64,000 nt of DNA, from positions 1 to 64,000 of the IMG/VR virus record IMGVR_UViG_3300011113_000805; one strand, written 5' to 3'. The position numbers and the translations under genes were made by a program. Below, in pieces: positions 7,345-51,121 of this stretch. The notes beneath the pieces were generated by a model. That model saw nothing but the letters and a program-made list of their open reading frames with translations. It had not been told where the DNA came from and ran no database searches. Within the stretch, counting starts at the first letter, position 1; the number at the start of each line of letters is the position of its first letter.

Positions 7345-7384
7345 TAAATAACAAATGCCCAGGTTGAATATCCAACCTGGGCAT
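7345..7384 (-). terminator. Hairpin, probable intrinsic terminator
   Basis: Perfect 12-bp stem atgcccaggttg (7355-7366) / caacctgggcat (7373-7384), T-rich tail on the minus strand. Confidence 0.6.
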
Positions 7385-7402
7385 GTCTGTTGCAAATTTT
7401 AC

Positions 7403-9247: not shown

Positions 9248-11291
<2,044 letters not shown>

Positions 11292-17829: not shown

Positions 17830-18299
17830 GCCGTGGGAGTCCTTGCACCTACAGCTATATTATTGCTTGTATTGTGATCCTGTTTATCTTCATTGGAGAC
17901 ATCGTACTGAGTGTCCATCACTTCCAGGAAGTCGGCTGCAACATCATCACCATGAGCATTCTGAACGTAGTTGTGCGCCATCTCCAGGATAGTGCCCTTG
18001 ATATCCAGAAGCACATTAGCATTCTCAATAAGCCTGGCCACCTCGGATGCGAATGACTCAAGGTTCATCTCCGGACGATCAGGCTTATCATCCTCCTCCG
18101 GGGCAGCCTCGAAGAGCCAATTCATACTTTTTGACCTAAGTGACTCTTCAATGGAAACATCATCAAGTGGATTGCGTGCCGTGGCCACACCGATGGAGAG
18201 CTTCTCAGCCTTGGTGAAGAACCTAAGAACTTGAGCATCCAGTGACTCCTCTGGGCTAATATTGGGATCACTGGTCTCGAATAGGAACTTCCTCTTCAT
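17826..18299 (-). CDS. Hypothetical protein
   Basis: ATGA-coupled; FLFE/WLFE motifs. Confidence 0.65.
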   Translation of the reverse strand: MKRKFLFETSDPNISPEESLDAQVLRFFTKAEKLSIGVATARNPLDDVSIEESLRSKSMNWLFEAAPEEDDKPDRPEMNLESFASEVARLIENANVLLDIKGTILEMAHNYVQNAHGDDVAADFLEVMDTQYDVSNEDKQDHNTSNNIAVGARTPTA

Positions 18300-22784: not shown

Positions 22785-23357
22785 TCACTGTGTAACAAGA
22801 GGGTGACAGTTCCAACACAGCGGTTCATAAGTATCTGCTCCGCCAACTTCGATCTCATCTTCAGATGGGACTCGCCTATGTGTCAATGCAGCATCAGCAC
22901 CACAGGCGACACAGACAGCAGCACACTTCTCCACACGTGTAGCGAATGACAGGATCTTCTCCATCTCTGGAAAAGGTTTCAGGTTAGCTGAGAGCTCGAT
23001 GGAGGAGACATAGACCGAGATACCACGCATGAAAGCTGTCAGTAGAGCACTTGCACAACCGTCAATCATAAAGGCCTCATCGACGGCAATAACATCAGTA
23101 GGATTTTTCTCGATGTAGCGAACGATATCCTCACCAGAGGAAACCGGGATTGCAGAGATGGAACTGCCTGAATGGGTCACAATAGCTGTCTCTGCATAGC
23201 GTCCATCAATAGTGGGCTTAAAGCAGGCGACACGAGTTTTTCGAAGACGATGACGCTCCACGGCGGCAGTGAGTCGAGTCGATTTTCCCGACCACATGGG
23301 ACCACAATAAACAACAAACTCTTTGTTTATCACCGATCGATGTGAACAACTAACCAT
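22785..23357 (-). CDS. tdk: Thymidine kinase
   Basis: GPMWSGKST, FKPTID.RY, VDEA.M, CVAC...YEPLCWNC. Confidence 0.92.
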   Translation of the reverse strand: MVSCSHRSVINKEFVVYCGPMWSGKSTRLTAAVERHRLRKTRVACFKPTIDGRYAETAIVTHSGSSISAIPVSSGEDIVRYIEKNPTDVIAVDEAFMIDGCASALLTAFMRGISVYVSSIELSANLKPFPEMEKILSFATRVEKCAAVCVACGADAALTHRRVPSEDEIEVGGADTYEPLCWNCHPLVTQ

Positions 23358-24326: not shown

Positions 24327-25334
24327 TCACAGTCCCCACCATTCCCAAGTACGGGCCAGTCCGTCTTCCAGTGAGACCTGAGGGGTCCATGCGATCTCTT
24401 GCCATGCTGTCGTGATATCAAGCTGTGTATCGCGAATATCACCCAGGCGAGCAGGGGCAACCTGTACCTGAATATCAGGCTTTCGATGTCGAAAGTGTTC
24501 CAGGATTGTGTTATTTGAGACACGGGTTCCTGTACCAATATTGACAACCTGCCCCGCAAAGAATTCTTCACGTCTTGCTGCAAGAAGATTTGCTCGTGCA
24601 ACATCGGTAACAAAGACCATGTCTCGGGTCTGCTCACCATCACCATCAGACCTTAGAGGATTTCCGGAGACAGCTGCATTACACCAGGCAGAAATGGCTG
24701 TAGAGTAAGCGCCTCCACCCAGCTGGCGGGGGCCGTAGACATTAGCATATCGCAAGGAGACAGCATCCAAGCCCCAAAGCCTATGTGATTGCCGCAGGAA
24801 ATGCTCCACCGTGAGCTTTTGCAGTCCATATGGTGACTGTGGATCTGTTGGATGAGCCTCAGGTGTTGGTAGCATCTCAACATTTCCATAAACTGCTGAC
24901 GTGGAGGAGAAGACGAGACGAACATGACTGGGAGACTTTCGAATGCTTTCCACCAATCGAGCAGTTCGAGTCACATTGATGTCAAAGGTCGTTGCGGGAT
25001 GCTCGACCGAGAATGTGACTCGAGGATTTGCAGCCAAATGAAAAACCGTATCGTAAAGTCCTCGTTCAATGCGACTGAGAATGTTAGGATCCTCAATGTC
25101 ACCTTGCACAACTACCACAGTATCCCGAGACCTTGCGTGTTCATAGAGGCTCTCGTACTGAGAGAGTAGGCCACCAAGAATAGATCGAATTCGAAGACCT
25201 TCCAGGAATTCGATGCTCCCTGCCGAGAGGTCGTCAATAATGTCGACCTTCCATCCTTTGCTTACCAACAGATGAACCAAATTGGATCCAATAAATCCAC
25301 AACCACCAGTTACCAATGCACGCATAAGAGTCAC
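24327..25334 (-). CDS. NAD-dependent nucleotide-sugar epimerase/dehydratase
   Basis: VTGGCGFIGS, HLAA, SSTSAVYG, SPYGLQK, RYANVYGPRQ, TRDMVFV. Confidence 0.93.
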   Translation of the reverse strand: MTLMRALVTGGCGFIGSNLVHLLVSKGWKVDIIDDLSAGSIEFLEGLRIRSILGGLLSQYESLYEHARSRDTVVVVQGDIEDPNILSRIERGLYDTVFHLAANPRVTFSVEHPATTFDINVTRTARLVESIRKSPSHVRLVFSSTSAVYGNVEMLPTPEAHPTDPQSPYGLQKLTVEHFLRQSHRLWGLDAVSLRYANVYGPRQLGGGAYSTAISAWCNAAVSGNPLRSDGDGEQTRDMVFVTDVARANLLAARREEFFAGQVVNIGTGTRVSNNTILEHFRHRKPDIQVQVAPARLGDIRDTQLDITTAWQEIAWTPQVSLEDGLARTWEWWGL

Positions 25335-25431: not shown

Positions 25432-26919
25432 ATGAGCAAAAGACTCTTCGAAGACAAGTTCAAGCGCGAGACAGGAAAGCGTTTCACAGATGATCTTCAG
25501 AAAATAAAGGACGCTGTTGACAAGGAAAAATTTTTCGTTCATTTCACCGACACGCCTAAAATAGGAATCAATCCAAGAAGCACTTTCCTTCCAGGACTCT
25601 ACGCTTATCCGCTTACTCGGGAAATCTATGAGAAGTTTGTTATCTCAGTGGACGAGTACGCAAGAGGACAAGGCAGGGCAGGAAGATATGTTTTTCTACT
25701 AAAAATAAAACCTGATGCAAAAATCATTGAGGGAAAAGAGTTGGAGGGGAGAATTGTCAAGAACTTTGCGTATTGCATTGCTCCCTTGCTGGATAATAAT
25801 CTTGTAATAGCAGTTCCTAAGAATCGATATCTCGGCCATGAAGAAGTCGCAGAGCTTATTGAAACACACTATCGAGATGATATTATGCTCGGGTTGGAAC
25901 GAATTCGTTCTGAACTCAAAAGAATTGAGTTTCGCATCAACAAGAGATCAGCCAAACTTGCAGCCTTAAAGACCGTTCTAAGAGAAACGGCACCTGATGC
26001 CGGAGAATTACCAGAATGGATTAACGAGAAACTTTGGGATGGATCAAAGGAATCTAAGAGAAACATACAAAAACTAACATTGGATCATATCACAAATGAT
26101 GAGTTGGCAAGTGGGAAGCTTGCAAGTGCAATTTACACTTACAAAGATCATCCCATTACAGCCGGCATTCGAAACAGTGTTGTTATCTCTAATGACATAA
26201 TAGCACTGCAAAATCTTGCAAATCACAGCTATTCTGGGGCTGCAACAAAAAGATGGGATGTCCTAAGAGACCTATTTGTCTTTGACAAGAAGATGAACAC
26301 AGCATCGTTCATTCGAACAAAGAGCGGTGAAAGAAAGGAAATGAAGCAAATCGTTAATGAATGCCTTGAGAGAACCGTGCAGATAATGAAAATCTCTAAG
26401 GAGAAGCTATTGCAGATTCTGAAACAAGATTCTGTTGGAACAAATATACTGCTAGGTCTAGGTGATGCCAATGTCCTCATAGATACTGGCATCGATGTCA
26501 GAAATACAGCAGCCGGCTGGGGTGGAATTCTAGGCGACCTTGAAGCAGCTCAGGCATACATCAGACCTCCGATCGGAAAATCAATAGAGGTCATAGCGAT
26601 GGTGGATCGATTTGAAGGTGATCCTGACAGTAAAACACCACCTGGCACTAGTACTCCCGATAAGGACTATGGAAAAGTTGCCGACGAAGAATGGAGAGAT
26701 TGGGCGGCAGGTCGGGAATCTAGTGCCAGGGATTTGTCACCTCGTGCTCTGGCACTCAATAAGAAATTCCTGGGCAAAGGATATCAGCAGGCAAAATACG
26801 ATAGGGACAATCGACTTATAAGGCCCGGAAAGGAATCGCCTACCGAGAGATGGAAGGATGCCAAGCTGGAAATGATTGTCAGAGACTGCATTAGGGAAAT
26901 GATCTTCTCCAAGAATTAG
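25432..26919 (+). CDS. Hypothetical protein (possible divergent ART-like fold)
   Basis: SD GAGG and CATATTTA upstream; FVHFT..KIGINP..GLYAYP; C-terminal IVRDCIREMI. Confidence 0.6.
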   Translation: MSKRLFEDKFKRETGKRFTDDLQKIKDAVDKEKFFVHFTDTPKIGINPRSTFLPGLYAYPLTREIYEKFVISVDEYARGQGRAGRYVFLLKIKPDAKIIEGKELEGRIVKNFAYCIAPLLDNNLVIAVPKNRYLGHEEVAELIETHYRDDIMLGLERIRSELKRIEFRINKRSAKLAALKTVLRETAPDAGELPEWINEKLWDGSKESKRNIQKLTLDHITNDELASGKLASAIYTYKDHPITAGIRNSVVISNDIIALQNLANHSYSGAATKRWDVLRDLFVFDKKMNTASFIRTKSGERKEMKQIVNECLERTVQIMKISKEKLLQILKQDSVGTNILLGLGDANVLIDTGIDVRNTAAGWGGILGDLEAAQAYIRPPIGKSIEVIAMVDRFEGDPDSKTPPGTSTPDKDYGKVADEEWRDWAAGRESSARDLSPRALALNKKFLGKGYQQAKYDRDNRLIRPGKESPTERWKDAKLEMIVRDCIREMIFSKN

Positions 26920-27974
26920 ACATCAATGTACTTCATTTGATGTACATTAGTGGATGTTCCCCAGGAGGGATCGGACTTCACGTTGGCTAGCCAGATGCTA
27001 TATGGGACAAGTTTCGATCCTCGATTTCCCCACACACGAAGCCAAGTCACCTGCATAGTTGTATCTGTCACCTTGAGGCGCATGAAGGGCTTACCATTCT
27101 TTGTCTGCTTCTCCTCCACCTGAAGGACACAGAACCAGCAGACATCCTCACCACCAGAAGAAAGCTCAGCAATAGGTGGAAGTTCTGCCTGCCGAATACG
27201 GGCCATGATCTCATCAGGAAAGATAATGTGATGGGGTGCTGAACCTGAAGTCTCCACCTGTTGTTGAACTTTTTGTGTCCGATCCCAGTCATCAATGTGC
27301 CTGACAGTCTCGATGAGTTCCAGGAGAATCGGTGGCGCATTGGCCTTTGCCGCCTTTCGCGGGTTCATGCCCCACCGACCCTTCTTCAGGGTGCCGTAGT
27401 TGCCGATGATAATCTCATGAAGTTGTCGATGATTAAGAAGGCGACCGTCCTGAAACTCTTCCAATGTTCCAAAGGCCTCCATAAAGAGGAGTGATTCGAG
27501 GCAGCTCCTATTCACCTTTGTGTGCCTCCACTTACCTTCAGAATCAAAGAGAAGCTCATCCAGGTTTCGATAGGGCCTATTCTCAAGGATTTCGGAGACA
27601 GCCGTGTCACCAACTCGCTTTAGAGATGAGAGCGGAGGAACGAATGCCTGTAAATCATTGGACCAGCTCCAGACATCACCAGAAGTATTGATGTCTGGTG
27701 GTGAGATTTTGTAGCCCATTTGCTTGATCTCTGAGACTACCACAGAGAGACCTTCAACATTTCCACTTTCTGACTGCAGGCAGGTTGCAAGCCAATCAGT
27801 TTCATAGTGTGTCATTAGCCATGCACCATAATAGGAGTCAATGGCATATGCAACCGAGTGAGAATTTGAAGTCAAAAGGCCGTTTGCAAGATAAAACTGG
27901 TGATCCGGATGATCCACTTCAAGGTCATAGGTCTGGTGTTCGCCGATGCTCTTGTAGGACTTAACTTTTGCCAT
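26916..27974 (-). CDS. dnaE: DNA polymerase III alpha C-terminal part fused to a split C-intein (27864-27974)
   Basis: MAKVKSYKSIGEHQTYDLEV...ANGLLTSN|SHSVAYA; PPDINTS, LKRVGD, OB-fold TKNGKPFM. Confidence 0.9.
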   Translation of the reverse strand: MAKVKSYKSIGEHQTYDLEVDHPDHQFYLANGLLTSNSHSVAYAIDSYYGAWLMTHYETDWLATCLQSESGNVEGLSVVVSEIKQMGYKISPPDINTSGDVWSWSNDLQAFVPPLSSLKRVGDTAVSEILENRPYRNLDELLFDSEGKWRHTKVNRSCLESLLFMEAFGTLEEFQDGRLLNHRQLHEIIIGNYGTLKKGRWGMNPRKAAKANAPPILLELIETVRHIDDWDRTQKVQQQVETSGSAPHHIIFPDEIMARIRQAELPPIAELSSGGEDVCWFCVLQVEEKQTKNGKPFMRLKVTDTTMQVTWLRVWGNRGSKLVPYSIWLANVKSDPSWGTSTNVHQMKYIDV

Positions 27975-28929
27975 AATCTTCACCTATAAGAATAAGCCCT
28001 GTTGATTTTTCAGTAAGGGCACTTAGAATTTGTGTAATACAGGATTCTTTGAATTTGCCCTTTTGAAATTCTGAGTGAGAAACCCTAATTACGGTATACC
28101 CTTTCTTTGTCAAGGCTTCATTTAATATTAAATCAGACCGCCTTATGTTTTCAAGTTTCTCAGCTCCGAATATTGGCAAAAAGTGAACAGGACCATCAAA
28201 TTCTACCACCACCTTCAACAGCGGATCCATGATATCGATTTGTCGTCTCTTCGAAATCGTGTTAAACGATACATCAAATATTCTTTGATTTTTACGAAAC
28301 CCAACATGATGTTTGCTAAGCATGTCAAATAAGGCTTTTTCAGGATAGCTTTGCTTAACAGCATGCATTCTCATAGTGCATTTCGAATAAAATTCTTCAG
28401 GATTGGAAGATCTCCACTTTGCAAGTGCAATTGTTCTTGCATGAAGAATTTCAGGTTTGTTTGAAGTAACTCTTGCTACACGTGATGATCTTTCACGACT
28501 TTTTTCACTCCTATTAAGATTGGACAAATTTTCACTTCTTGCCTTAATGGCACTAGGTGACCTTCGAATGCCTGATGATTTTGCTTCACCATGGCCGGCC
28601 CCATTTATTTTCCCAGCACTACTGTACTTTTTAACACATTCGTCTGCTGCAATTTGACCAGTATAGTCTTTCTTGGTAATGCCATGAGATTTTCTTAGGT
28701 GACGAGTTAAGATTCGAAACTTTTCTCCGCATATAAGGCAGACAACAAAATCCTTTCCTTCAGTTAGAGAAATACATTTCTCGCATGAAAGAACATGTGA
28801 CCAGAATATTGAGTTTTCCCTTAGGAAAGATCTTCCGCAGTCACAACAATTTCCAAGTCTTCCTGAATGATTTTCCAGATTGGAAGCATCTGACCGCAAG
28901 TTGTCCTGAATTTGTGATCCATCGTGCAT
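27961..28929 (-). mobile_element. Vsr-like/DUF559 homing endonuclease between the dnaE split-intein halves
   Basis: Zinc finger CLICG...HLRKSH; IDIMD...VVEFDGPVH...D...GYTVIRV; overlaps both dnaE parts out of frame. Confidence 0.8.
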
Positions 28930-31742
28930 CGAACTTTTTCTCCTGTATCAAGCTCAAACTCGTGCAGCTCTAAGACACCATGGTCATGCTTTGCACGAAC
29001 CTGAACAAACAAGTCTTTTCCTGTTGATTCTTCACGAGACTTAACAAAGCAACCTGGGGTGATGTCCTTGAGCATCAAAGTTTCAATAAACTCACCATTA
29101 TGTGAATACGTATGTACCTCTTCCTCAAAGTGACAAGTTTTATTGAAGCCATAAAGTGAGAAGTACGCGATGGTATCAAAGAGGTCCTGGGCTTGCTTTG
29201 GTGTCAATCCGGATTTCTCAATACAGCCGGAGACAAACTTCTTCTCCAGTGCCTCCTTCTCCTCAGACTTCTTACCAAGTGAGGTAAGATCTTTCTTCAC
29301 CAGAGTCTTTCGCATCTTGTCAGAGTCACCAGGTGAGAAACCTGCGAGTTTCTGAGCAAGTACCATGAATTGTTCCTGGAACACAATAAAGCCGCATGTG
29401 GGGCCCAGGACTTCTTCGATAACAGGATGATCGTACTTGATGGCATCTCGATTCTGCTTTGCCTCCACATATTTTTTGTGCACATTGGCTTTCAAAGGAC
29501 CGGGGCGATAGATCGCCGTAATGGTGGAGAGGTCGATAATATTCTCAGGCTTTGCTGCCACACAGAACTTTCGAGCTCCATCTGATGTGAACTGGAAGAT
29601 GCCTGACCAACGACCCTCCTGATAGACATGCCTGAAGACTTTTGAATCATTAGGCTCCACATAGCGACAATTGAGCTTCTGATCATAGAAGTCTTTTACT
29701 TCGACAAAGGTGGGATCTCGACCAAGCTCTCGGAGGAGGATTCGACGAATGCAGTCCTCCACCATTTGCATTTGCTTCAGGCCCAAGAAATCAAACTTCA
29801 GAAAGCCGTTCTCTTCCAAGTTTCGAATATTGACACCTTCGGTCCACGGTGTCTGGAGTTCTCCCTTTACCGTGATGAGAGGCATGTGCTTCTCAAGTTC
29901 TGGGCAGATGAGGACGCCGCCAGCATGTCGACCAACAGATCGATTCATCATGAAGAGTGATCGCACCTTGTCTTGTACCTGAGGATACTTCTCCATAAAC
30001 TCACGGTATCGAGGTGAGTGCTCCATACAGTCCTCGTGCTTCAGAACAAACATGGACTTCTCCATGTTAGGATCACGGGATTTCTCGGCAACCTCACGTT
30101 CAAGGGGTCCGGTGACGGCATTGACTTCATCGAAGGGAACACCGTAGAACTTGGAGACATCTTTTACCAGTGACTTCAGCTTCAGGGTATTGAAGTTGGA
30201 GACCGGCACCACTGATTCCTCACCGAAGATCTCACGTGCCGCCTCAATGAGCTTATCACGATCACCGACATCAGTGTCAATATCTGGCCAAGATGCCTTC
30301 TGCCGAGAGAGAAACCGCTCCCAGAGGAGATCATACTTAATAGGATCCACGTGTGTGATACCAAGGAGATAGTTCACAAGGGAGCCTGCGCCACTTCCGC
30401 GGCCGGCGCCTGGAAGGGTCCTGTTCTCGGCGACCTTAAAGACTTTCTCCAAGGTAAGAAAGTAGTCCTCAAACTTGAGGAACTTGATATCACCAAGCTC
30501 CATTTTTGCACGTTCGATATAGACAGGATCCTTGTGGAGTCCTTCCTCAATGAGTCGCTCCTTCACGATCTGTGTCAATTGACTCATCCCGGTCTGCTCA
30601 GGTGTGTTGAACTTTGGAAGCTTTGCGCTACCATCAAACCATACCTGCTGACATTGCTCCCAAACAATATCGTGTGACCGCTCGATGGCATCTCGGACTC
30701 TCTCCTCGTTGCCACGGTAGAAGCTATTGTCCGGGATAAGGCTCACGAACTCGTCCCAGATCTCATTCGCATTCTTCGGATAAAGCTCAGCCTTCAGATC
30801 TGTCCTCAGTGGGAGGACAGGTGCTGTGCCATCATTCTTGATGCGACCGGGCTGAAGCTGACGATAGATCTCACGAGACTCCCAGAAGTCCGGACCTGGG
30901 TAGTGCGAGTCTGAAGTAACGATGAGTGGGACGCCAGTCTTCTGTGAAGCATCTAGAAGAAACCGATTCGTAAGATTCTGGGCAGGAAGCTTGTTGAACT
31001 GTAGCTCTAGGAAGAAATTATCGCGACCAACAGCATCAGTAAAGCGATCCACCATATTTCCAAGACGTCCCAGGATACGATTACGACCAGCTACTCCTGC
31101 GACATCATAGAGATCAGGTGTCAGCTCGGAGAACTTCTTGTCAGGAAACTCTCGAAAGATATTTCCAGAGGCGAAACCGCCTACACAGGCCGTGCTGACA
31201 ATAAGGCCGCGACCATGTTCCCGAAGCATCTGAAAGTCGATTCGAGGAAACTTATAGAAACCCTCACGGAAAGATCGCTTCACCAGTGTAAAGAGATTTG
31301 CCAGGCCCTCATTGTCACGTGCCACCACCACTATGTGGTAGCGTCGATTAATGTTATCAACAACATCGGAGGATCGAGTCTCATCGGCATCCTCCACCAC
31401 AAGGCGACCATTGCCGTCCTCGTCAACAAGGGACTCCTCCTCCTGGCTCATTCCTGACTTGGAGAGGGCATATGCCTTTCGCCACTCATTGAGATCCGGA
31501 ACAAAGTAGAACTCAACACCAAAGAGCTGTCGAAAGTGCTTTCCTTTGGTGATGAGCTTTTTTGCGTGAGCATGAGCATGAGCAAGACCATTGCCATTGC
31601 CATGATCTGTCAGGGTCCAAGAGTCAAGTCCATTGGAGATACTGAAGTCGATGTGATCGGAGGGCTGCCCAAATCCATCGTAAGGTGAAAAATGGCTATG
31701 ACCATGAATGGAGGCATATCGACGAGGAGGTTGGATGATCAT
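28821..31742 (-). CDS. dnaE: DNA polymerase III alpha N-terminal part fused to a split N-intein (about 28821-29138)
   Basis: PHP HGHSHFS..DG/TDHG, GRGSGAGSL, PDIDTD, KFDFLGL, YGFNK, then a Hint N-half with CTMDHKF. Confidence 0.93.
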   Translation of the reverse strand: MIIQPPRRYASIHGHSHFSPYDGFGQPSDHIDFSISNGLDSWTLTDHGNGNGLAHAHAHAKKLITKGKHFRQLFGVEFYFVPDLNEWRKAYALSKSGMSQEEESLVDEDGNGRLVVEDADETRSSDVVDNINRRYHIVVVARDNEGLANLFTLVKRSFREGFYKFPRIDFQMLREHGRGLIVSTACVGGFASGNIFREFPDKKFSELTPDLYDVAGVAGRNRILGRLGNMVDRFTDAVGRDNFFLELQFNKLPAQNLTNRFLLDASQKTGVPLIVTSDSHYPGPDFWESREIYRQLQPGRIKNDGTAPVLPLRTDLKAELYPKNANEIWDEFVSLIPDNSFYRGNEERVRDAIERSHDIVWEQCQQVWFDGSAKLPKFNTPEQTGMSQLTQIVKERLIEEGLHKDPVYIERAKMELGDIKFLKFEDYFLTLEKVFKVAENRTLPGAGRGSGAGSLVNYLLGITHVDPIKYDLLWERFLSRQKASWPDIDTDVGDRDKLIEAAREIFGEESVVPVSNFNTLKLKSLVKDVSKFYGVPFDEVNAVTGPLEREVAEKSRDPNMEKSMFVLKHEDCMEHSPRYREFMEKYPQVQDKVRSLFMMNRSVGRHAGGVLICPELEKHMPLITVKGELQTPWTEGVNIRNLEENGFLKFDFLGLKQMQMVEDCIRRILLRELGRDPTFVEVKDFYDQKLNCRYVEPNDSKVFRHVYQEGRWSGIFQFTSDGARKFCVAAKPENIIDLSTITAIYRPGPLKANVHKKYVEAKQNRDAIKYDHPVIEEVLGPTCGFIVFQEQFMVLAQKLAGFSPGDSDKMRKTLVKKDLTSLGKKSEEKEALEKKFVSGCIEKSGLTPKQAQDLFDTIAYFSLYGFNKTCHFEEEVHTYSHNGEFIETLMLKDITPGCFVKSREESTGKDLFVQVRAKHDHGVLELHEFELDTGEKVRCTMDHKFRTTCGQMLPIWKIIQEDLEIVVTAEDLS

Positions 31743-31800: not shown

Positions 31801-31831
31801 CAAAAGGCCAGGCAATGCTGCCTGGCCTTTG
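31801..31831 (-). terminator. Intrinsic terminator
   Basis: aaaggccaggca-atgc-tgcctggccttt stem with T run. Confidence 0.75.
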
Positions 31832-31852: not shown

Positions 31853-32299
31853 TTACTCAATATTGCCGGTGTAGGGCTCCACAAGCAACTTGCCAGCGAC
31901 TCGACACCGATCCAGATAGTGTGCCAGCTGTTCGAAGGAAGTGCAGACCTTGATACCACTTCGGGAGAGCATAAGGTTGAAGAGAGCCTTTGGTGGAAGA
32001 CCATTGCAGAAATACACGATAGGCTTGCCCTTTGCAAAAGCATACCCCGCCTCCCAGATGGTGCCAATGTCCTTATCGCGGGTATTCACCAGGAGGAAAT
32101 CTGCAGTCTCGATGTGATGAAGATTGCCTGAGAATACCGTGTCCTGCGTTTCGCGAGGAGCATCAGGTGGGCAAACAAAGATTCGACGGGGTGAAGCAAG
32201 ATCAATCCAATCAGACCTCTCATCGAAAATACCTTCGAGACGAGTAAGCTCTTCTGCCTGAACCTGATTGAACCATCCTGATGCAAGATATACCTTCAT
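31853..32299 (-). CDS. Nucleoside 2'-deoxyribosyltransferase / (d)NMP N-glycosidase (Rcl/MilB-like)
   Basis: KVYLASGWF, SPR, DIGTIWEAGYA.A.GKPI, NLML. Confidence 0.85.
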   Translation of the reverse strand: MKVYLASGWFNQVQAEELTRLEGIFDERSDWIDLASPRRIFVCPPDAPRETQDTVFSGNLHHIETADFLLVNTRDKDIGTIWEAGYAFAKGKPIVYFCNGLPPKALFNLMLSRSGIKVCTSFEQLAHYLDRCRVAGKLLVEPYTGNIE

Positions 32300-32309
32300 G
32301 TTTGACTCC

Positions 32310-32906
32310 TTAGTAGTTAGTCCGGATATTATTGTCAGTCATACCAAGTTGTTTTGCTTCGTCCCTACAAGTATTGACAAAATCTTTCGGACCTGCCAGG
32401 AACAAGGGACCTTCCAGGATCTCATCACGGCTCAGGAAAGTACTCAGGACTGGTGCAGGACGAGATCCTTGTGATATCGTGCACCAGTGAAAGATGCTAC
32501 CTCCGGAGGTACCCCAGCTGAGGTCGAAGATACGAGACGAGATGGGAGTATGGCCCCTCGTGATGACAATAAGATGTGTCTTAAGACCGGCATATCGGCG
32601 CTTCTCGGCAAGAAGAACACCGACACCTGCTGCGGTACCGGCGACAGCAATGGTTGCTGTAGGATCAGTATAGCCAGGAAAGCCTTTGCCAATAGGGCCC
32701 TCCAGGGAGAAATGAGAACCACGAGGAGCATCCAGCCGAGTGCCGGCACGCACAAGCAATGTAACAGACCCAGCAGTGAAATCAGAGATTGCGAAATACG
32801 AATCACCTATCTTGACACACTGTCCTGGGATTACCTCGGTAAGACTATGGCTCAGAGTAACAGAGGCATAGTCACCCCTTCGTACTACCTGAATGATATC
32901 AGACAT
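32310..32906 (-). CDS. Ferredoxin-NADP reductase-like (FAD/NAD-binding) protein, degenerate
   Basis: PGQCV..YFAIS, LEGPIGKGF, AVAGTA, FLAGPKDF..NIRTNY. Confidence 0.65.
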   Translation of the reverse strand: MSDIIQVVRRGDYASVTLSHSLTEVIPGQCVKIGDSYFAISDFTAGSVTLLVRAGTRLDAPRGSHFSLEGPIGKGFPGYTDPTATIAVAGTAAGVGVLLAEKRRYAGLKTHLIVITRGHTPISSRIFDLSWGTSGGSIFHWCTISQGSRPAPVLSTFLSRDEILEGPLFLAGPKDFVNTCRDEAKQLGMTDNNIRTNY

Positions 32907-33417
32907 TGAGGCCGTCCATAATCACACTTACCTCCCTTTCCAAGTTCTCGTCATCAACATTAAGCTCTAAGACCTTGCAAGTAGTCCAGACAGCAAACTC
33001 GAGATACGTATCATGAATTCTTTGCAGGTTCTTGCTAATGGCATCATAGTCATCTCGAATACCGGCGTAGGAAGATCGGGTCGGAATAACAATGACTGTT
33101 CCAAGTTGACTATGACGCCTGTCAAGCTCTCGCAGGACACTCATGTCAGTATTTCGACCAAGAACATGTGAATACACCCACTCAGATGGCCAGGAGCGGT
33201 CAAGAACGACTGACGCTCCTGATGATTCTAGGTAAGAGGTAAAGTAAGTATCGACATACCTTACAGCATTGATGAAGTACCCAGGATCGCTGAGGAAATA
33301 CTTGTGCTCGTCATTATTCTTGAAGTAGGGAATATTGAGACGACGAGCTAACTCCTTGGAAATCTGTGTTTTCCCACATTGGTCAGGACCCTCTAGAATA
33401 ATAACTTGCTGTCCCAT
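32899..33417 (-). CDS. Deoxynucleoside monophosphate (dTMP-like) kinase
   Basis: IILEGPDQCGKT, VLDRSWPSEWVY. Confidence 0.85.
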   Translation of the reverse strand: MGQQVIILEGPDQCGKTQISKELARRLNIPYFKNNDEHKYFLSDPGYFINAVRYVDTYFTSYLESSGASVVLDRSWPSEWVYSHVLGRNTDMSVLRELDRRHSQLGTVIVIPTRSSYAGIRDDYDAISKNLQRIHDTYLEFAVWTTCKVLELNVDDENLEREVSVIMDGLNV

Positions 33418-34343
33418 TACTTGCTCTCAATCTTACGAATACGAGCTTCATACCCAATCGTCTGCCAATCATCGATCATCTGGCGCTCACCAGGGAAAAG
33501 GAGAGAATCCGGAAGACGCTGAAGCTCAAAGTACCAGGCAGACTTGGAGAAATCCCAATCGGGCTGATTCTCTGGGTTTGCCAATGAAGGAATGTGCTTT
33601 CCAGCAGAAGGAGCTCGACCGGTGTTACCAAAGACCTTGTCTGTGTTGAGGCAGACCTTATTGCCACCCATTGCATCAAGCTTTGTTAGAAGTGCAGACC
33701 ATCCGGAACCAGGCACTGTATCAGTACCATCAGGATTCAAATGTGCCAGACGAAGCTCACGAAGGATGAGACGACCAATAAGATTGAGCTCGTCCGTGAG
33801 ACCGTTCTCACAGCGGCGAGAGAAGTAACCACGAAGTGCCATAAAATTAACGACACAAACAAGATTGGTTTGCTGACCGTGAAGGGTAAGGTATCGACAA
33901 TCCTGCGGTGGAATACCGGCTGCAACCATGTCATTATAGAGCTGGAATGAATCTTGTGCGAGCTTGGTTGCACGCTTATTGAAGTCATGACTCAGGGCAA
34001 TGTTAAGTGGAACAGTAACAGCATGATCGATCACCTCAGGCATCTGTGAAGTGACACAGTAAGCCCAGCCGACACGACCTCGAGTAAACTGAGCAAGACC
34101 AACTCGGCTGATACCTTCGATACGAACCTGAAAGTTGAGGGCTTCTTGAGGAACCGGAAGTGCGGTGCCAGCGAGAACCTCGTGGCATGCCTCAATATGC
34201 TTTGGATTGGTCGGATCAAACTCCACATTCCGAAGGGAGTACCAGGTCTCACGGTACCAGTCCCAGAACATCTTGAAGGGTGTCGGATTGCCGGCATCGA
34301 GGAGGGTGACACGAATGTTATCAAAACCAGAAACTACCTGCAT
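33417..34343 (-). CDS. Divergent ThyX (flavin-dependent thymidylate synthase) paralog
   Basis: IEGISRVGLAQFTRGR...SQM, AGIPPQDCRYL...VNFMALRGYFSRRC; start at ATG 34343 with SD GGAG. Confidence 0.75.
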   Translation of the reverse strand: MQVVSGFDNIRVTLLDAGNPTPFKMFWDWYRETWYSLRNVEFDPTNPKHIEACHEVLAGTALPVPQEALNFQVRIEGISRVGLAQFTRGRVGWAYCVTSQMPEVIDHAVTVPLNIALSHDFNKRATKLAQDSFQLYNDMVAAGIPPQDCRYLTLHGQQTNLVCVVNFMALRGYFSRRCENGLTDELNLIGRLILRELRLAHLNPDGTDTVPGSGWSALLTKLDAMGGNKVCLNTDKVFGNTGRAPSAGKHIPSLANPENQPDWDFSKSAWYFELQRLPDSLLFPGERQMIDDWQTIGYEARIRKIESK

Positions 34344-34365
34344 TACTTGCTCCAAGTTACTTGTG

Positions 34366-34394
34366 ATTTTATTGTAGAGATAATTGATGTTCAA
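34366..34394 (-). promoter_or_regulatory. Sigma70-like promoter
   Basis: TTGAAC-N17-TAAAAT. Confidence 0.6.
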
Positions 34395-34395
34395 T

Positions 34396-35586
34396 TCAAA
34401 GTTTTGCAATAATCGACTTCAATTCAACCATCGAATCATGAAAGTTCTTAACACCTAAGTGTGTGTCAATGTAATTGCGTCCTGCCTGAATCATTTTCGC
34501 ATGATTTTCTTCAGACCATCCTGGTAGAAGCTCATCATAAATCCAATTAGCGATGAGATCTCCATCCGGACGTCCATCGGGACCATAGCATTTTTCAGGC
34601 AATCGATGCATGATGGTGTCCCACTCATCAGAAACATAAAACCTTCGATCAACAATCGGAATAACACCCCAGTCAATCGCCTCGGACTGGCAATTTTGCA
34701 TACCACCATCACCCCATCGAATCTCGTCACCCTTGCTGAATGTCAGATCAATGGAGAATCGAGGAGCAGTCCCGGGACCATCACCAGCCAGAATCTTAGG
34801 AACCTGGTCACGAGTGTAAGCTCCCTTCATGATGGGCACAACTCGTTTCCATGCATCATGGTTTTCACTCTTTGATTTGATCGCCCCAAAGAAAGACATA
34901 CCATTTTCATCTGGTGACCATCCCCAAGCCGCTAGTCGAGGAGGATTCTCACGTTGCATCAAGGAATCAAACATTTTCAGTACCTGTACGGCACCTTTCC
35001 CAGTAGAGAACCTCGTGTTCGAAATGATGTACCGTGGATCTCTTTCGAGAGAAGATTCGACTGCTGTTTTCTTGCAAACATTATCATGAACATTACATGA
35101 CATGACATGTGGAGTCGTCTCTTCAAGAAATCCTTTCCTAAGATTGTGCTCTCTAATTGCAGGTCGAACTGACCACCATGCATCCCAGTGGGGCATCCTG
35201 GAGAAGTCGGTACACATACGAGTCTCATGTGTGCCAATTCCTAGGGCCACCTTAGGTGCCTTAATCTTTGCAAAAACCTCAGATGCTGTAGGCCATTTGT
35301 TGTTCATGAAGAATAACGAAAAGACAATGTCAGCATCTTCACAGGCATCCAAAACTTCCTGATCAGAGCAAGCAATAGTAACGCCTTCACCAAACTTAAG
35401 CTTAAGCTTCTCACGATGGCGATCTCGAGATCTCGAGGTCCTTTCAGGTGTAGAGAGTTCTGGAGTCTGTGAAACGATCACCATCCCCTCTTGGTAGCTT
35501 CTGTTGCCATTGAACAGAAAAAGCAAATTTTCAACATATGTCCTAGCGCCACCAAAACCTTCGTAAGTAATTACTTTAGCTAGCAT
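34396..35586 (-). CDS. GT-B fold glycosyltransferase (candidate DNA/nucleotide GT)
   Basis: FGGARTY, TRFSTGKG, GGMQNCQSEAIDWGVIPIV, AGRNYI. Confidence 0.7.
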   Translation of the reverse strand: MLAKVITYEGFGGARTYVENLLFLFNGNRSYQEGMVIVSQTPELSTPERTSRSRDRHREKLKLKFGEGVTIACSDQEVLDACEDADIVFSLFFMNNKWPTASEVFAKIKAPKVALGIGTHETRMCTDFSRMPHWDAWWSVRPAIREHNLRKGFLEETTPHVMSCNVHDNVCKKTAVESSLERDPRYIISNTRFSTGKGAVQVLKMFDSLMQRENPPRLAAWGWSPDENGMSFFGAIKSKSENHDAWKRVVPIMKGAYTRDQVPKILAGDGPGTAPRFSIDLTFSKGDEIRWGDGGMQNCQSEAIDWGVIPIVDRRFYVSDEWDTIMHRLPEKCYGPDGRPDGDLIANWIYDELLPGWSEENHAKMIQAGRNYIDTHLGVKNFHDSMVELKSIIAKL

Positions 35587-42382: not shown

Positions 42383-42793
42383 CTAGTACCCCTCTTCAAG
42401 CCTCTTATGAATGATTGCATCCTTCTTCAGGAAAGCCTTAAAGAATTCCTCAGAATCAACACCAAGCAAGATAAGTGCTGCTGTAAAGTAGTTAAAGGAA
42501 TCAACCATCTCCTCAAGGAAAAGCTCGCGATTAAACGACGTGTCTTCACTAAGACGATGATTTTTCCAATTTTTGAGCTCACCTAGCGCTTCAAAAATTT
42601 CTTCAACACCTTTAAGTGTTACTTCCCTTACAAGTTGTTGTGATTTTTTCTGTGAAATATCTACTGGCCAGCTTCCATAGGCTCCTCGCTTGTCAGCTAT
42701 TTCACGCATAAACTCTTCGCGAAGAGCAAAGATTTCTTGAAGTCTATCGGGTCTCAAATGTGTCATTCCCGGCACCAGATGAATGTTGTGCAC
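42383..42793 (-). CDS. All-alpha NTP pyrophosphatase (dimeric dUTPase/dCTPase-like)
   Basis: EEIFEAL..LKNWKNH...EEMVDSFNY...KKDA....R...Y. Confidence 0.8.
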   Translation of the reverse strand: MHNIHLVPGMTHLRPDRLQEIFALREEFMREIADKRGAYGSWPVDISQKKSQQLVREVTLKGVEEIFEALGELKNWKNHRLSEDTSFNRELFLEEMVDSFNYFTAALILLGVDSEEFFKAFLKKDAIIHKRLEEGY

Positions 42794-43052: not shown

Positions 43053-43847
43053 TTAAAGTTGTACACGAGGTGCCCACCAGGTTGTCCTTCCATCACGTGT
43101 CTCTTGGACAACCACTAGCTCACCATTAGGATCTGTCTTTCGACCGTATACTAGCATTTCATGCTCCCCTACATTACCATCGAATCCCTTGTAGGTAAGA
43201 ATAGTAGAACCACCTGAAGAGTATGCAGCTGAGATCACAGATCGAACCGCAAGGCAAAGATCATGCAGTTGAATATCTGTGCACTGTGAAACTTTTCGGT
43301 GTGGGCTCAATTTTACCAACCATAGAGAATCAGCCTTCAGGTAGTTTCCTACACCGGAAATGATTCCCTGATTCATCAAGACCTCGGCAAGTGTTTTCTC
43401 CGGAAACTTTCGAAGACGACCAATAAATGTCTCTGGTGAAACATTGTCACTTAGCATGTCCGGACCTAGTGTATCCAGTTTTGCCTTCAATCCGGCACGA
43501 TCTGATACCTTGAGGGTTCCAAAATTTCGAGGGTCACTGAAGAAGAGATCGCCCTTCGAAGTTTTCATGGTGACTCGAGTATGTTTTCCTTGACGATTAG
43601 ACCAGGATCCGGACATTCCAAGTGTATTAAAGATGACAGCATCACTATTGAAGAAGGTGAAGTAAATGAATTTTCCTTTACACCCGACAGTTTCCACACC
43701 AAGCGGAAATGACAAATCACTCAGGCCTTCAATAGGATTCCTTAGATATCGCCCGCTATTAATGACAATTCCTTCAATAAGGGCAACACCCTCTAGAAAT
43801 TGATTAATGGAATCAACAAACCCACGAACTTCTCCACCTTCAGGCAT
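43053..43847 (-). CDS. Fpg/Nei DNA glycosylase (zincless finger)
   Basis: MPEGGEV, KGK, LGMSG, DPRNFG, LGPD, GVGNY; no zinc-finger cysteines. Confidence 0.92.
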   Translation of the reverse strand: MPEGGEVRGFVDSINQFLEGVALIEGIVINSGRYLRNPIEGLSDLSFPLGVETVGCKGKFIYFTFFNSDAVIFNTLGMSGSWSNRQGKHTRVTMKTSKGDLFFSDPRNFGTLKVSDRAGLKAKLDTLGPDMLSDNVSPETFIGRLRKFPEKTLAEVLMNQGIISGVGNYLKADSLWLVKLSPHRKVSQCTDIQLHDLCLAVRSVISAAYSSGGSTILTYKGFDGNVGEHEMLVYGRKTDPNGELVVVQETRDGRTTWWAPRVQL

Positions 43848-43887: not shown

Positions 43888-44673
43888 TTAAGAGTTCGAA
43901 TCAATATTGGCTCGAATTTGACGAATAACCTCGGGTGTCTCGTCATGATGGCTCACTTCGAAACCGGTACCATTGGCGGCCAGAAGTTCATAGATCTCTC
44001 GGTCATTGCCATCACCTCTGCAGCGGTCACCTACAAACCACACGGTGTGGCCACGAAGTCGATGCATAACGAAAGTCTTGTTCCAACCCTGTGGGAAGAT
44101 GTCAAATGATGTGTCACCTCCCAGCTTCACATCGATCTCTTCACCGTAGCTCGTGAAGAGCTGCCGCAGTTGGACTAGTGCTTCCTGTCGCCACCCGGTC
44201 CTAATGTCAAATTGGCGGAAAGCTTCACGCTCCTCACTTCCGGACTCCCTTCCCACCGGACACCAGTTGAGCATTGACTCACGATAAGAGATAAAGTTGC
44301 CGGTGACTTGCAGTGGATGCTGTTGCATAAAGTTACGCTGCAAAGCGAGGAGATCAAACACCATTCGCCTATAGGTGTCGACACCTATCTCCTCACGCAT
44401 TGAGTAAAGTGGATCCATTCGACGCCAGCACTTTTGCCAGTCACGAATCCAGTGCTGTGTCCCATTGCAAGGAAAAACTTCAAGACCCTCCTCAAAGAGC
44501 TCATCAGGAACCTGTTGCTTCACATAGTCAAGGCCGGAACCTGTGAGAATTCCAACCCTTGTCTTTCCTGGTGCCAAGAGATCTTCAAGGAGAGAGTTGA
44601 CATTCTCCTTGGTCATTGAGCCACGTGCAGGTGTCAGTGTGCCATCTAGATCGAAGAGAACAATATGACGCAT
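43888..44673 (-). CDS. Eukaryote-type phosphomannomutase (HAD)
   Basis: LFDLDGTLTPAR, TGS, FISYR.SMLN.CPVGR, GGDTSFDIFP.GWNK, GD....GND.EI. Confidence 0.88.
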   Translation of the reverse strand: MRHIVLFDLDGTLTPARGSMTKENVNSLLEDLLAPGKTRVGILTGSGLDYVKQQVPDELFEEGLEVFPCNGTQHWIRDWQKCWRRMDPLYSMREEIGVDTYRRMVFDLLALQRNFMQQHPLQVTGNFISYRESMLNWCPVGRESGSEEREAFRQFDIRTGWRQEALVQLRQLFTSYGEEIDVKLGGDTSFDIFPQGWNKTFVMHRLRGHTVWFVGDRCRGDGNDREIYELLAANGTGFEVSHHDETPEVIRQIRANIDSNS

Positions 44674-45227: not shown

Positions 45228-45866
45228 TTAAAAACCAAAAGCCTCAATCGTGTGCTGGAAAGGTGAGCCCGGTATCTCGCGGACTTGTCGCAACATCTCT
45301 TCCGCAAGCCAGCAGATCTCCCGCTGAGCATCAGGTTTCATTCGAAGGCCCAAGAAGTGATTGAACGATCGCCAGTTGAACATAATATCCATAGTGATCT
45401 GATTTCCGTATGGAAGGTAGAAGCGTGCCGTCTCCTTTGCTCGCTTACGACTCATTCCACCATCCACCAACCGCTTCAGGGTCTCGTGGTACTTTTGGAT
45501 TGCATCTTCCATAAAAGTGGCATACCTCTCCTGCTCATCTGCCGGCCAGTCAGGAGGAATGTAGTACTTGTTATCCTTGAGCTCTTTATAGCGAGCTGAC
45601 TCTGCATTGACTGAGAGACCAATCCTGTGCTTCAGAAGCTGAATATGAGTTGCTGCATCCACAGTCACCAGAAAATGAAGGGCAGATTTTTCGAAAACGG
45701 TGTGATGTCCCTGGTCAGCAAGCATTTTCAGGAGCTGGGGGATCCGTTGTCTCTTTTCATCGGTGAGATCTCTTGAGGTTGATGTCCATGCTGAGAGTGC
45801 ATGTGTCTCATCAGAACCATACCAGCCTGTAAGCTGGACACGGTTGGCGCCTATTGTTTCTAACAT
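45228..45866 (-). CDS. thyX: Flavin-dependent thymidylate synthase
   Basis: GHHTVFE, QLLKHRIG....ESARY, KETARFYLP, NWRSFNHFLGLR...AQREI. Confidence 0.92.
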   Translation of the reverse strand: MLETIGANRVQLTGWYGSDETHALSAWTSTSRDLTDEKRQRIPQLLKMLADQGHHTVFEKSALHFLVTVDAATHIQLLKHRIGLSVNAESARYKELKDNKYYIPPDWPADEQERYATFMEDAIQKYHETLKRLVDGGMSRKRAKETARFYLPYGNQITMDIMFNWRSFNHFLGLRMKPDAQREICWLAEEMLRQVREIPGSPFQHTIEAFGF

Positions 45867-45868
45867 GA

Positions 45869-46471
45869 TTAGTCCAGTGTGTACTTGAGATCAATCTTGC
45901 ATGTGAGTGTTGGAAGACGAAGCTCATTAGCCAGCCCATGAGACTTTGCTTCGATCGCATCTAGATACCAGTCAGCATGCCCACGCTCATGAACAAGCTT
46001 CAGAAAGTAATCAGATGGCTTGCCGCAGTTTCGTGCCATCATCTCATAGACCTTCTTGTTGAGTCGATCGGCCTCACGTGAGTCAGCCTTAAGCTCCTCA
46101 ACCTTTCCAATAGCACCAGAGGAAACATCATGAATCATAAGGGTTGCATCCGGATCCATGAATCGCATGCCTTCGGCACCAAAGGAGAAAAGGATGGCAC
46201 CACAGGACATTGCTTTGCCTTCTACAATGGTAGCAACAGGTACCCGTGAAGATCGAATAGAGGCAATCATGGACATTAGGGAATAAACCTGGCCACCATA
46301 AGAATCGATAACAACTGGAATAACTGACTGACCAGTGTTCTGGGCCATGCTCATTTGCGAAGTGAACTCCTTTGCTGACTCTTCATCAAACTTGTTAACA
46401 CGAATGATGATTGGATCGACCTTGAGTTCAACTGCCTTGATCTGTGGTGCAATGTCTGCAATAAAGTTCAT
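45869..46471 (-). CDS. clpP: ClpP-family protease
   Basis: IDSYGG, GKAMSCG, LMIHD, D.YLDA.EA...GL; start at ATG 46471. Confidence 0.85.
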   Translation of the reverse strand: MNFIADIAPQIKAVELKVDPIIIRVNKFDEESAKEFTSQMSMAQNTGQSVIPVVIDSYGGQVYSLMSMIASIRSSRVPVATIVEGKAMSCGAILFSFGAEGMRFMDPDATLMIHDVSSGAIGKVEELKADSREADRLNKKVYEMMARNCGKPSDYFLKLVHERGHADWYLDAIEAKSHGLANELRLPTLTCKIDLKYTLD

Positions 46472-46529
46472 GTTATATCCTGCTTGTGTTAGGTTGTTGA
46501 TTACCTGCTCTTGCACATCTTCTTCGTAG

Positions 46530-51120: not shown

Positions 51121-51121
51121 G

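Follow-up and report, generated by a model that had tools for sequence, protein, structure and literature searches.

The genes between positions 31,853 and 35,586

The stretch of DNA analysed here, referred to as the window, comprises 64,000 nucleotides (positions 1 to 64,000 of IMGVR_UViG_3300011113_000805) and comes from a 257-kb uncultured jumbo-phage contig. Five co-oriented open reading frames lie on its minus strand at 34396-35586 (396 aa), 33417-34409 (330 aa when read from a TTG codon), 32899-33417 (172 aa), 32310-32906 (198 aa), and 31853-32299 (148 aa). More than 100 homologues of the second of these are 306-312 aa long, so its real start is the ATG at 34343, giving a protein of 308 aa (33417-34343), here called ThyX2. 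ThyX2 and the following kinase gene share 1 nt, the kinase and the FNR-like gene overlap by 8 nt, and the last gene starts 10 nt after the FNR-like stop codon. With the ATG start, ThyX2 lies 52 nt downstream of the first gene instead of overlapping it, and a consensus scan found promoter-like hexamer pairs in that gap (34366-34399, minus strand), TTGAAT-17-TACAAT and TTGAAC-17-TAAAAT, which are consensus matches only. Between the last gene and dnaE, direct reading of the minus strand revealed an intrinsic-terminator-like hairpin at 31802-31827, with a perfect 9-bp G+C-rich stem, a 4-nt loop, and TTTT, which an automatic scan had missed because the T run has 4 T rather than 5.

A canonical thyX (ThyX1, 212 aa) is encoded at 45228-45866 on the minus strand, scores 130 bits against Pfam Thy1 and 107.6 bits against TIGR02170 (cutoff 87.9), and carries KHR...ESARY. 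A thymidine kinase gene at 22785-23357 on the minus strand (Pfam TK, E 1.1e-34) shows that this phage also makes dTMP by salvage. At 42383-42793 on the minus strand lies a candidate short dUTPase_2/MazG-like all-alpha NTP pyrophosphatase (136 aa), for which Pfam dUTPase_2 gives E 0.004, below the cutoff.

The observation on which the original prediction rested was confirmed: the five genes, their spacing, the terminator before dnaE, the second thyX, and the motif changes of ThyX2 (RHR to RGR, S.RY to SQM, and AQWEI to LTDEL), together with its C-terminal extension (about 95 aa), are all present, and the motif changes and the extension are conserved in the family.

Predicted properties of the encoded proteins

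ThyX2 consists of a core (about residues 1-200) and a conserved C-terminal extension (about 200-308). It scores 61 bits against Pfam Thy1 (cutoff 24.8), but only 37 bits against the TIGR02170 thyX equivalog (cutoff 87.9). Its AF2 model has a pLDDT of 95.6, and all top PDB fold matches in a Foldseek search are ThyX or PolB, with TM 0.62-0.78 and 13-21% identity; the ThyX fold is thus predicted with high confidence. The equivalents of T. maritima (Tm) Q75, R78, S88, R147, and R174, and of H. pylori (Hp) R66, are invariant, R174 being the residue that activates dUMP (PMC8316439). In contrast, H79 is replaced by G, R90 by M, Y91 by P, and Hp R165 by A or M, and these replacements are conserved across the family alignments, with M and P invariant in 84 sequences. 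In canonical ThyX, R90 and Y91 assist methylene transfer and Y91 forms a lid over C5/N5 (PMC8316439, PMC11940539, PMC6514825), while the RHR motif and R165 bind the FAD phosphates. A one-residue insertion in the ThyX motif was also found. ThyX2 belongs to a virus-only family with 39 invariant residues. We found no relative among 185,579 genome representatives and none in GenBank phages, but more than 150 environmental (metagenomic) members, which the sources leave unnamed or call hypothetical, two being labelled ThyX.

The 172-aa protein (32899-33417) is a P-loop nucleoside/nucleotide kinase of the TMPK/dNK class, matching phrog_761 'thymidylate kinase' at 2e-12 and carrying a P-loop and a DR...S...Y motif; its family profile matches SPbeta YorR (2axp) at E 2e-7 over its full length, followed by TMPK and deoxyguanosine kinase. 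The 198-aa protein (32310-32906) is a compact, PyrK-like member of the FNR superfamily whose family profile matches PyrK (1ep1_B) at E 8.5e-6, followed by phthalate dioxygenase reductase and NqrF, and in which the PGQ, GP.G.GF, and GGTG-type motifs and a C-terminal N-Y are conserved. The 148-aa protein (31853-32299) had been proposed to be an N-glycosidase, with Rcl/MilB-type enzymes as the precedent, but it is a bona fide NDT-type nucleoside 2'-deoxyribosyltransferase: Pfam PF05014 scores 47 bits (cutoff 28.8), Y4, D77, and E83 are conserved, and its family profile matches 6evs at E 2.5e-26, 1s2d at 1e-13, and 1f8x at 7e-10, whereas DNPH1 reaches only 1e-4 over part of the protein, and BlsM and MilB only 0.14 and 0.74.

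The first protein (34396-35586) has no hit in Pfam, PHROG, NCBIfam, or PDB sequences and only 6 homologues among 1.8 billion representatives, making it nearly an ORFan. Its AF2 model (pLDDT 85.6) matched GT4-type GT-B enzymes in a Foldseek search, namely BshA (3mbo, E 1.2e-10), PimB', and HepE, with TM 0.55-0.66, supporting a GT-B glycosyltransferase fold; T4 AGT and BGT are not among its best 50 fold matches.

Conservation of the ThyX2 neighbourhood

We next asked which of these genes accompany ThyX2 in other phages. Across 25 non-redundant loci, a TMPK/dNK-like kinase (this one or the mini-kinase c11) lies next to ThyX2 in 23, an NDT within 6 kb in 21, and a 5'-deoxynucleotidase, supplied by two unrelated folds (NT5C or HD/YfbR-like), occurs in 17, whereas the FNR-like reductase is an accessory partner present in 8. 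The association of ThyX2, kinase, and deoxyribosyltransferase persists through rearrangements down to 28-40% ThyX2 identity, although the loci come from related phages and part of the linkage is therefore inherited synteny. The glycosyltransferase occurs in 1 of the 25 loci, that of this phage, being absent from all 32 other ThyX2 loci, and a homologue sits next to a portal gene in an unrelated phage, indicating that it is specific to this lineage and not part of the conserved system. The slot next to ThyX2 is variable: in relatives, the position of the glycosyltransferase holds a dUTPase_2+NT5C fusion, which this phage lacks, although its 136-aa pyrophosphatase candidate falls in the same BLAST cluster and is homologous to the N-terminal domain of that fusion; a glutamine-synthetase-like ligase and a SAM methyltransferase occupy the slot in two other ThyX2 loci, L018 and L013, respectively. 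Many related large contigs carry ThyX1 without ThyX2, so ThyX2 behaves as an accessory module.

Possible functions and relation to known systems

Our findings suggest, but do not prove, that the cluster is a phage nucleotide-pool module built around a neofunctionalised ThyX that makes a 5-substituted pyrimidine nucleotide, a reading that we favour but hold only tentatively. In this view, ThyX2, which keeps the residues that hold and activate a uracil-type nucleoside monophosphate but has replaced those used to finish methyl transfer and to clamp FAD, would most likely still transfer a one-carbon unit to C5 of a pyrimidine (deoxy)nucleotide, dUMP favoured over dCMP, yielding something other than plain dTMP, for example a 5-hydroxymethyl or further substituted pyrimidine dNMP. 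The kinase would phosphorylate that product or its nucleoside so that the phage DnaE polymerase can use it. The NDT, together with the 5'-deoxynucleotidase of most relatives, would work at the nucleoside level (dNMP to dN, then a base swap, then re-phosphorylation), feeding deoxyuridine to the pathway or removing the competing canonical nucleoside. Where present, the FNR-like protein would supply reduced flavin to a ThyX2 that has lost its FAD-phosphate contacts, and the GT-B enzyme, an add-on in this one lineage, may or may not glycosylate the product. What the analysis establishes are the folds, the motif changes, the gene linkage, and the restriction to viral sequences, while the substrate, the chemistry, the formation of a modified base, any glycosylation of it, its incorporation into DNA, and the role of each partner are inferred. 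As the phage makes dTMP by two ordinary routes, complete replacement of T is unlikely. Kinase plus NT5C pairs also occur in phages with ordinary DNA, such as SPbeta with YorR and the NT5C-type enzyme YorS, and thus the partners alone do not prove modification.

The original prediction, a hypermodification pathway in which the T4 logic is built on a ThyX fold with a partner reductase and the resulting pyrimidine is glycosylated, is therefore only partly supported. The diverged ThyX-fold paralogue with a conserved altered signature, the adjacent kinase, the FNR superfamily membership, and the GT-B fold all held, but the glycosyltransferase and reductase are not general partners and the last gene was misassigned. 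The view that no characterised ThyX-fold base-modifying enzyme was known in such an operon also needs qualification, as one was hypothesised in 2018 for gp130 of phage SP-15 (PMC5977210); the idea is not unprecedented, although no such enzyme has been characterised.

Among the alternatives, ordinary salvage is less likely but possible: ThyX2 would be a second thymidylate synthase making dTMP with an external flavin reductase, and the kinase, NDT, and nucleotidase would be a general deoxynucleoside salvage and pool-balancing island next to the replication genes. The retained dUMP-binding and dUMP-activating residues are equally compatible with such a mechanistically altered dTMP synthase, the neighbourhood is rich in plain nucleotide-metabolism genes (TK, RNR, GMP reductase, dCMP deaminase, and MazG), the best solved relative of the kinase, YorR, comes from a phage with ordinary DNA, and Tm ThyX mutants at R90 and Y91 are slowed, not described as dead (PMC8316439). 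This reading is weakened by the presence of ThyX1, the conserved replacement of four functionally important residues, the gained extension, the score far below the equivalog cutoff, and the accessory distribution of ThyX2.

Cytosine modification appears doubtful. Here ThyX2 would act on dCMP to give 5-methyl- or 5-hydroxymethyl-dCMP, with the kinase standing in for gp1 and the dUTPase_2-like domain as the dCTPase. The co-presence of ThyX1, TK, ThyX2, kinase, and NTP pyrophosphatase mirrors T4 td, tk, gp42, gp1, and gp56, dCMP deaminase lies near ThyX2 in two of the loci (L001 and L003), and Thy1, dUTPase_2, NT5C, Nuc_deoxyri_tr2, and AAA_28 are all enriched in virome contigs with modified cytosine in the MetaGPA study (PMC8670742, supplementary table 2), but that enrichment is confounded by phage lineage, as many generic phage domains are enriched too. 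Moreover, the arginine that activates uracil by acting on N3-H (Tm R174) is invariant, whereas cytosine has no N3-H, and NT5C and NDT have no role in the T4 scheme. Least likely is a free-base route as in MilA/MilB, in which the modified nucleotide would be broken down to a free base or nucleoside that is put into DNA by base exchange or released as a small molecule. An NDT can move a free modified base onto deoxyribose, and an Fpg/Nei-like glycosylase is conserved about 8 kb upstream in 11 loci, but the NDT is far from MilB and BlsM, no TGT/DpdA-type transglycosylase was seen in the window, and this reading is pure inference.

Compared with canonical ThyX of T. maritima (TM0449), M. tuberculosis, and H. 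pylori, ThyX2 shares the fold and the substrate-binding Q, R, S, R, and R residues, but differs in its low identity, the four replacements, the insertion, and the extension. PolB (PDB 4p5b), which methylates UMP/dUMP in polyoxin biosynthesis, is likewise a ThyX paralogue recruited to a pathway other than thymidylate supply and coexisting with a housekeeping TS (PMC5954106), but it is bacterial, still methylates, and belongs to a nucleoside-antibiotic cluster, whereas ThyX2 is viral, has lost the R-Y pair, and sits with a kinase and an NDT. Bacillus phage SP-15, which has hypermodified thymine, offers an independent parallel: it has one canonical-like and one divergent Thy1 protein, the latter (gp130, hypothesised to be a hydroxymethyl-dUMP synthase) lying in the order NDT (gp127), a small ORF, SDR reductase (gp129), and gp130, with an HD 5'-nucleotidase, a phosphomannomutase, and glycosyltransferases elsewhere in the genome. 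The SP-15 NDT is homologous to the family described here (hhalign 99.1%), but ThyX2 shows no detectable sequence similarity to gp130, so that the parallel with gp130, whose function is itself only a hypothesis, rests on gene context only; in addition, the SP-15 reductase is not FNR-like and its polymerase is of the Pol I type, whereas this phage has DnaE. Finally, the T4 dCMP hydroxymethylase pathway (gp42, gp1, gp56, and alpha/beta-GT) and the SPO1/phiW-14 hydroxymethyl-dUMP pathway with dTTPase and dTMPase (phiW-14 details in PMC5977210) follow the same logic of a TS-like enzyme, a dedicated kinase, an NTP pyrophosphatase and/or nucleotidase, and sometimes a GT-B glycosyltransferase, but their TS-like enzymes have the ThyA fold and need no flavin, and none of those pathways uses an NDT.

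Organization of the cluster and identity of its members

The window is part of the IMG/VR contig UViG_3300011113_000805, a 257-kb contig from an uncultured jumbo phage, and five ORFs on the minus strand occupy positions 31853-35586, as the original prediction had described. More than 100 homologues of the second gene, here called ThyX2, are 306-312 aa long, so that its start is the ATG at 34343 (308 aa) and not the upstream TTG, which leaves a 52-nt gap after the first gene, and this gap holds promoter-like sites. The following three genes are tightly packed, with a single shared nucleotide, an 8-nt overlap, and a 10-nt gap, respectively, and a perfect 9-bp hairpin followed by TTTT at 31802-31827 separates the cluster from dnaE. 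A canonical thyX (ThyX1) is located at 45228-45866, scores 130 bits on Pfam Thy1, and with 107.6 bits passes the TIGR02170 equivalog cutoff of 87.9. All motif changes that had been listed for the second ThyX copy are present. The observation was confirmed.

ThyX2 shows a predicted ThyX fold but is not a canonical thyX. It scores 61 bits on Pfam Thy1, but only 37.2 bits on TIGR02170 against the cutoff of 87.9. The AF2 model has a pLDDT of 95.6, and all best PDB fold matches are ThyX or PolB, with TM values of 0.62-0.78 and 13-21% identity. The adjacent 172-aa protein is a P-loop kinase of the TMPK/dNK class, which matches phrog_761 (2e-12) and, as a profile, SPbeta YorR over its full length (E 2e-7), followed by TMPK and deoxyguanosine kinase. 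Its similarity is split between TMPK, an NMP kinase, and the dNK-like proteins dGK and NDUFA10, and a role on a modified monophosphate, as for T4 gp1, would be an inference.

The 198-aa protein is a compact member of the FNR superfamily. Alone it has no Pfam hit, including to FAD_binding_6, but a profile made from 8 sequences matches PyrK (E 8.5e-6), phthalate dioxygenase reductase, and NqrF. The NAD(P)-binding glycine motif is present, with the family consensus GGTGIGA and AGTAAGVG in the window copy, and the C-terminal N-Y is conserved. In contrast, the flavin-binding motif RxYS is not preserved, as the family has G/D-x-Y-F-A-I-(A/S) and lacks the Arg.

The last gene (148 aa), which had been proposed to encode an N-glycosidase, encodes a true nucleoside 2'-deoxyribosyltransferase (NDT). 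It scores 47.2 bits on PF05014 (cutoff 28.8), and the family profile matches the characterised NDTs 6evs (E 2.5e-26), 1s2d (1e-13), and 1f8x (7e-10). DNPH1/Rcl is reached only at 1e-4 over the C-terminal half of the protein, and BlsM (0.14) and MilB (0.74) are more distant. In 12 family members E83 and D77 are invariant and Y4 is nearly invariant, corresponding to the catalytic Glu nucleophile, the Asp, and the N-terminal Tyr of L. leichmannii NDT, and the N-terminal loop reads YLASGWFN, as in NDTs. NDT proteins of 380-392 aa were considered as possible informative fusions, but their extra part is a GIY-YIG homing endonuclease, making them uninformative.

The first gene (396 aa) is almost an ORFan, with 6 homologues in 1.8 billion representatives. 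Searches of Pfam, PHROGs, NCBIfam, and PDB, with the single sequence and with the profile, found nothing, and only a fold search resolved it. Its AF2 model (pLDDT 85.6) is predicted to adopt a GT-B (GT4-like) fold with two Rossmann domains, and Foldseek matches BshA, PimB', HepE, and MshA at E values of 1e-10 to 1e-8. T4 AGT and BGT are not among the best 50 fold matches.

Elsewhere on the minus strand of the window, dnaE is split (26916-31742). A 973-aa ORF carries the PHP, polymerase, and finger domains, and its last ~100 aa begin with Cys and look like the N-terminal part of an intein, although Pfam Intein_splicing gives only E 0.034. It is followed by a 322-aa ROS/MUCR + DUF559 endonuclease-like ORF and then by a 355-aa ORF with the HHH_6 domain, and relatives show other split patterns, with 2-3 DnaE pieces. 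At 48619-51183 and 46530-47531, the ribonucleotide reductase large subunit carries an intein (Intein_splicing 89 bits, PT-HINT), and a neighbouring 333-aa ORF has a TSCPD domain plus a weak hit to the C-terminal part of an intein. A sigma-70 family factor, a GroEL-type chaperonin, an Fe/Mn superoxide dismutase-like protein, and a Clp protease are also encoded (8395-9165, 9511-11118, 18296-19003, 45869-46669), which is typical jumbo-phage cargo.

Altered active site signature of ThyX2

To map the active site of ThyX2, HMMER alignments to H. pylori (Hp) and T. maritima (Tm) ThyX were combined with alignments of the family. The equivalents of Tm Q75, R78, S88, R147, and R174, and of Hp R66, are all invariant. 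Tm H79 is replaced by G, R90 by M, Y91 by P, and, in the alignment to 3ah5, Hp R165 (Mtb R190) by A or M. The replacements are conserved, and M and P are invariant in the 84-sequence alignment. The ThyX motif RHRxxSxxxxSxRY is therefore not intact and reads R-G-R-V-G-W-A-Y-(N/C)-V-(E/T)-S-Q-M-P.

According to the literature, R174 activates dUMP by acting on N3-H, whereas S88, R90, and Y91 assist the attack on the flavin carbinolamine, and the R90A and Y91A mutants are much slower (PMC8316439; PMC11940539). Y91 forms a lid over C5 and N5, and the RHR motif and R165 bind the FAD phosphates (PMC6514825). ThyX2 therefore keeps the apparatus that holds and activates a uracil-type nucleotide, but it has changed the part that completes methyl transfer and the part that clamps FAD. 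It has also gained a conserved ~95-aa extension with an invariant VFGNTGR loop. The strong conservation of the replacements argues for a new function rather than decay.

Distribution of ThyX2 and its gene neighbourhood

ThyX2 belongs to a virus-only family with more than 150 metagenomic members at 44-83% identity, which the sources leave unnamed or call hypothetical, except for two labelled ThyX. No relative was found in a scan of 185,579 cellular genome representatives, a blastn search of the cluster against 50,697 GenBank phages gave no match, and a tblastn search with ThyX2 found only canonical ThyX cores at 26-36% identity. DnaE is below 30% identical to any cultured phage, so that no host or cultured relative emerged from these comparisons.

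All ORFs of 33 loci were clustered, and partners near ThyX2 were counted over the 25 non-redundant ThyX2 loci. A P-loop kinase is found in 23 loci, an NDT in 21, a 5'-deoxynucleotidase in 17, the FNR-like protein in 8, and the GT-B enzyme in 1. The nucleotidase is supplied by two unrelated folds, one being NT5C fused to a dUTPase_2-like NTP pyrophosphatase, which occupies exactly the slot held by the GT in this window, and the other an HD/YfbR-like enzyme in the clade at about 40% identity. Gene order differs between clades, so the linkage is more than frozen synteny. In the distant clade, a 298-aa gene upstream of the NDT had a weak DUF447 hit and was suspected to encode a flavin reductase, but its conserved D.D and SGTG motifs look like a primase-polymerase instead, and this idea was dropped.

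The GT is not part of the conserved system. The contexts of its homologues were short contigs or an unrelated phage, where homologue P0123 lies near a portal gene, and gave no link to ThyX2. The slot beside ThyX2 is variable, as it holds a GT-B enzyme here, whereas in the ThyX2 loci L018 (8920-9936) and L019 a glutamine-synthetase-like protein (Gln-synt_C 59 bits) is located immediately upstream of ThyX2. Ligases of this kind are partners in thymidine hypermodification clusters. In locus L013 (10921-11970) a SAM-dependent methyltransferase (Methyltransf_12/23, O-methyltransferase-like) is inserted between ThyX2 and the kinase, and in L023 (9698-10789), and also in L010 and L015, a GMP reductase/IMPDH-family gene (249 bits) lies between the FNR-like gene and the NDT, so these phages remodel purine pools as well. 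An Fpg/Nei-type DNA glycosylase (H2TH) is conserved about 8 kb upstream of ThyX2 in 11 loci, in the window at 43053-43847 (minus strand) and also in L001, L007, L009, L013, L018, and L023, together with a short dUTPase_2-like gene and two ~75-aa ORFs.

Possible function and relation to known systems

The original interpretation, a modification pathway built on a ThyX paralogue whose product is glycosylated, is partly supported, since the ThyX paralogue, the kinase, and the FNR-like assignments hold, while the GT is not part of the conserved system, the "N-glycosidase" is an NDT, and no modification has been demonstrated. The gene arrangement, the sequence signature, and the gene linkage were established here, whereas the catalytic activity of ThyX2, including any methylation of dUMP, the substrate of the kinase, any hydroxymethyl-pyrimidine DNA acceptor of the GT, and the role of each partner are inferred. 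In the mechanism we propose, ThyX2 would transfer a one-carbon unit to C5 of a pyrimidine nucleotide but release a product other than dTMP, and loss of the Tyr lid could let water in and give a hydroxymethyl product. The kinase would phosphorylate the product or its nucleoside, and the nucleotidase, NDT, and kinase would form a nucleoside-level loop able to swap thymine for uracil on deoxyribose or to dispose of the canonical nucleoside. The FNR-like protein would supply reduced flavin to an enzyme that no longer clamps FAD. In this view, the GT-B enzyme is an add-on in this lineage. Sugars could be supplied by GlmS (GATase + SIS), a GDP-mannose-4,6-dehydratase/epimerase-like protein, conserved next to dnaE in 8 loci, and a eukaryotic-type phosphomannomutase, encoded on the minus strand at 5491-7395, 24327-25334, and 43888-44673, but these could equally serve another glycosylation target.

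Other explanations are a second dTMP synthase within a salvage island, a cytosine-specific version of the pathway, and a free-base route. Uracil is favoured as the base because the R174 equivalent is invariant. There are two arguments for cytosine, the presence of ThyX1 and TK in the same phage, like td and tk in T4, and the MetaGPA study, in which the Pfam domains Thy1, dUTPase_2, NT5C, Nuc_deoxyri_tr2, and AAA_28 are enriched in virome contigs with modified cytosine (PMC8670742, supplementary table 2), although that enrichment is confounded by phage lineage. If ThyX2 makes only dTMP, it would still be a mechanistically unusual ThyX that works without the R-Y pair and the FAD clamp.

A more far-reaching possibility, which we consider doubtful at present, is that ThyX2 would be the first flavin-dependent, ThyX-fold enzyme to install a non-methyl C5 substituent on a pyrimidine deoxynucleotide. 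It would then define a new pre-replicative DNA-hypermodification route in a widespread clade of uncultured large phages, fed by a nucleoside-level base-swap branch (5'-deoxynucleotidase, NDT, kinase) and using interchangeable decorating enzymes next to ThyX2 (GT-B, glutamine-synthetase-like ligase, methyltransferase) in different phages. If the product is a new base, it would add to the known chemistry of phage DNA and to the enzyme toolbox for modified nucleotides, and would give a genomic marker for predicting modified DNA in metagenomes.

The family is new to annotation, while the concept varies a known pre-replicative modification logic, with a precedent that has been hypothesised but not characterised. 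All biochemically characterised phage pyrimidine-modifying synthases use the ThyA fold, and a ThyX-fold counterpart has only been guessed at, for Bacillus phage SP-15. Literature searches for a characterised ThyX-fold base-modifying enzyme in phages found none, and yielded only PolB and the SP-15 hypothesis. Our findings add a large, unannotated, virus-only family with a precise altered active-site signature, a conserved partner set amenable to direct cloning and assay, and an unexpected constant partner, a true deoxyribosyltransferase, that no known modification pathway uses.

In the DNA of SP-15, part of the thymine is replaced by a hypermodified uracil. This phage encodes two Thy1 proteins, and its authors hypothesised that the divergent one, gp130, is a hydroxymethyl-dUMP synthase (PMC5977210). 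In the GenBank record (KT624200, 33730-36911), the genes run NDT (gp127), a small ORF, an SDR reductase (gp129), and gp130, with an HD 5'-nucleotidase elsewhere in the genome, and SP-15 also has a phosphomannomutase and glycosyltransferases. The SP-15 paper does not discuss the NDT, which is homologous to the family described here (hhalign 99.1%), whereas a profile comparison of gp130 and ThyX2 found no sequence similarity. A divergent ThyX has thus been joined to an NDT and a reductase at least twice, once in a phage known to carry a 5-substituted uracil.
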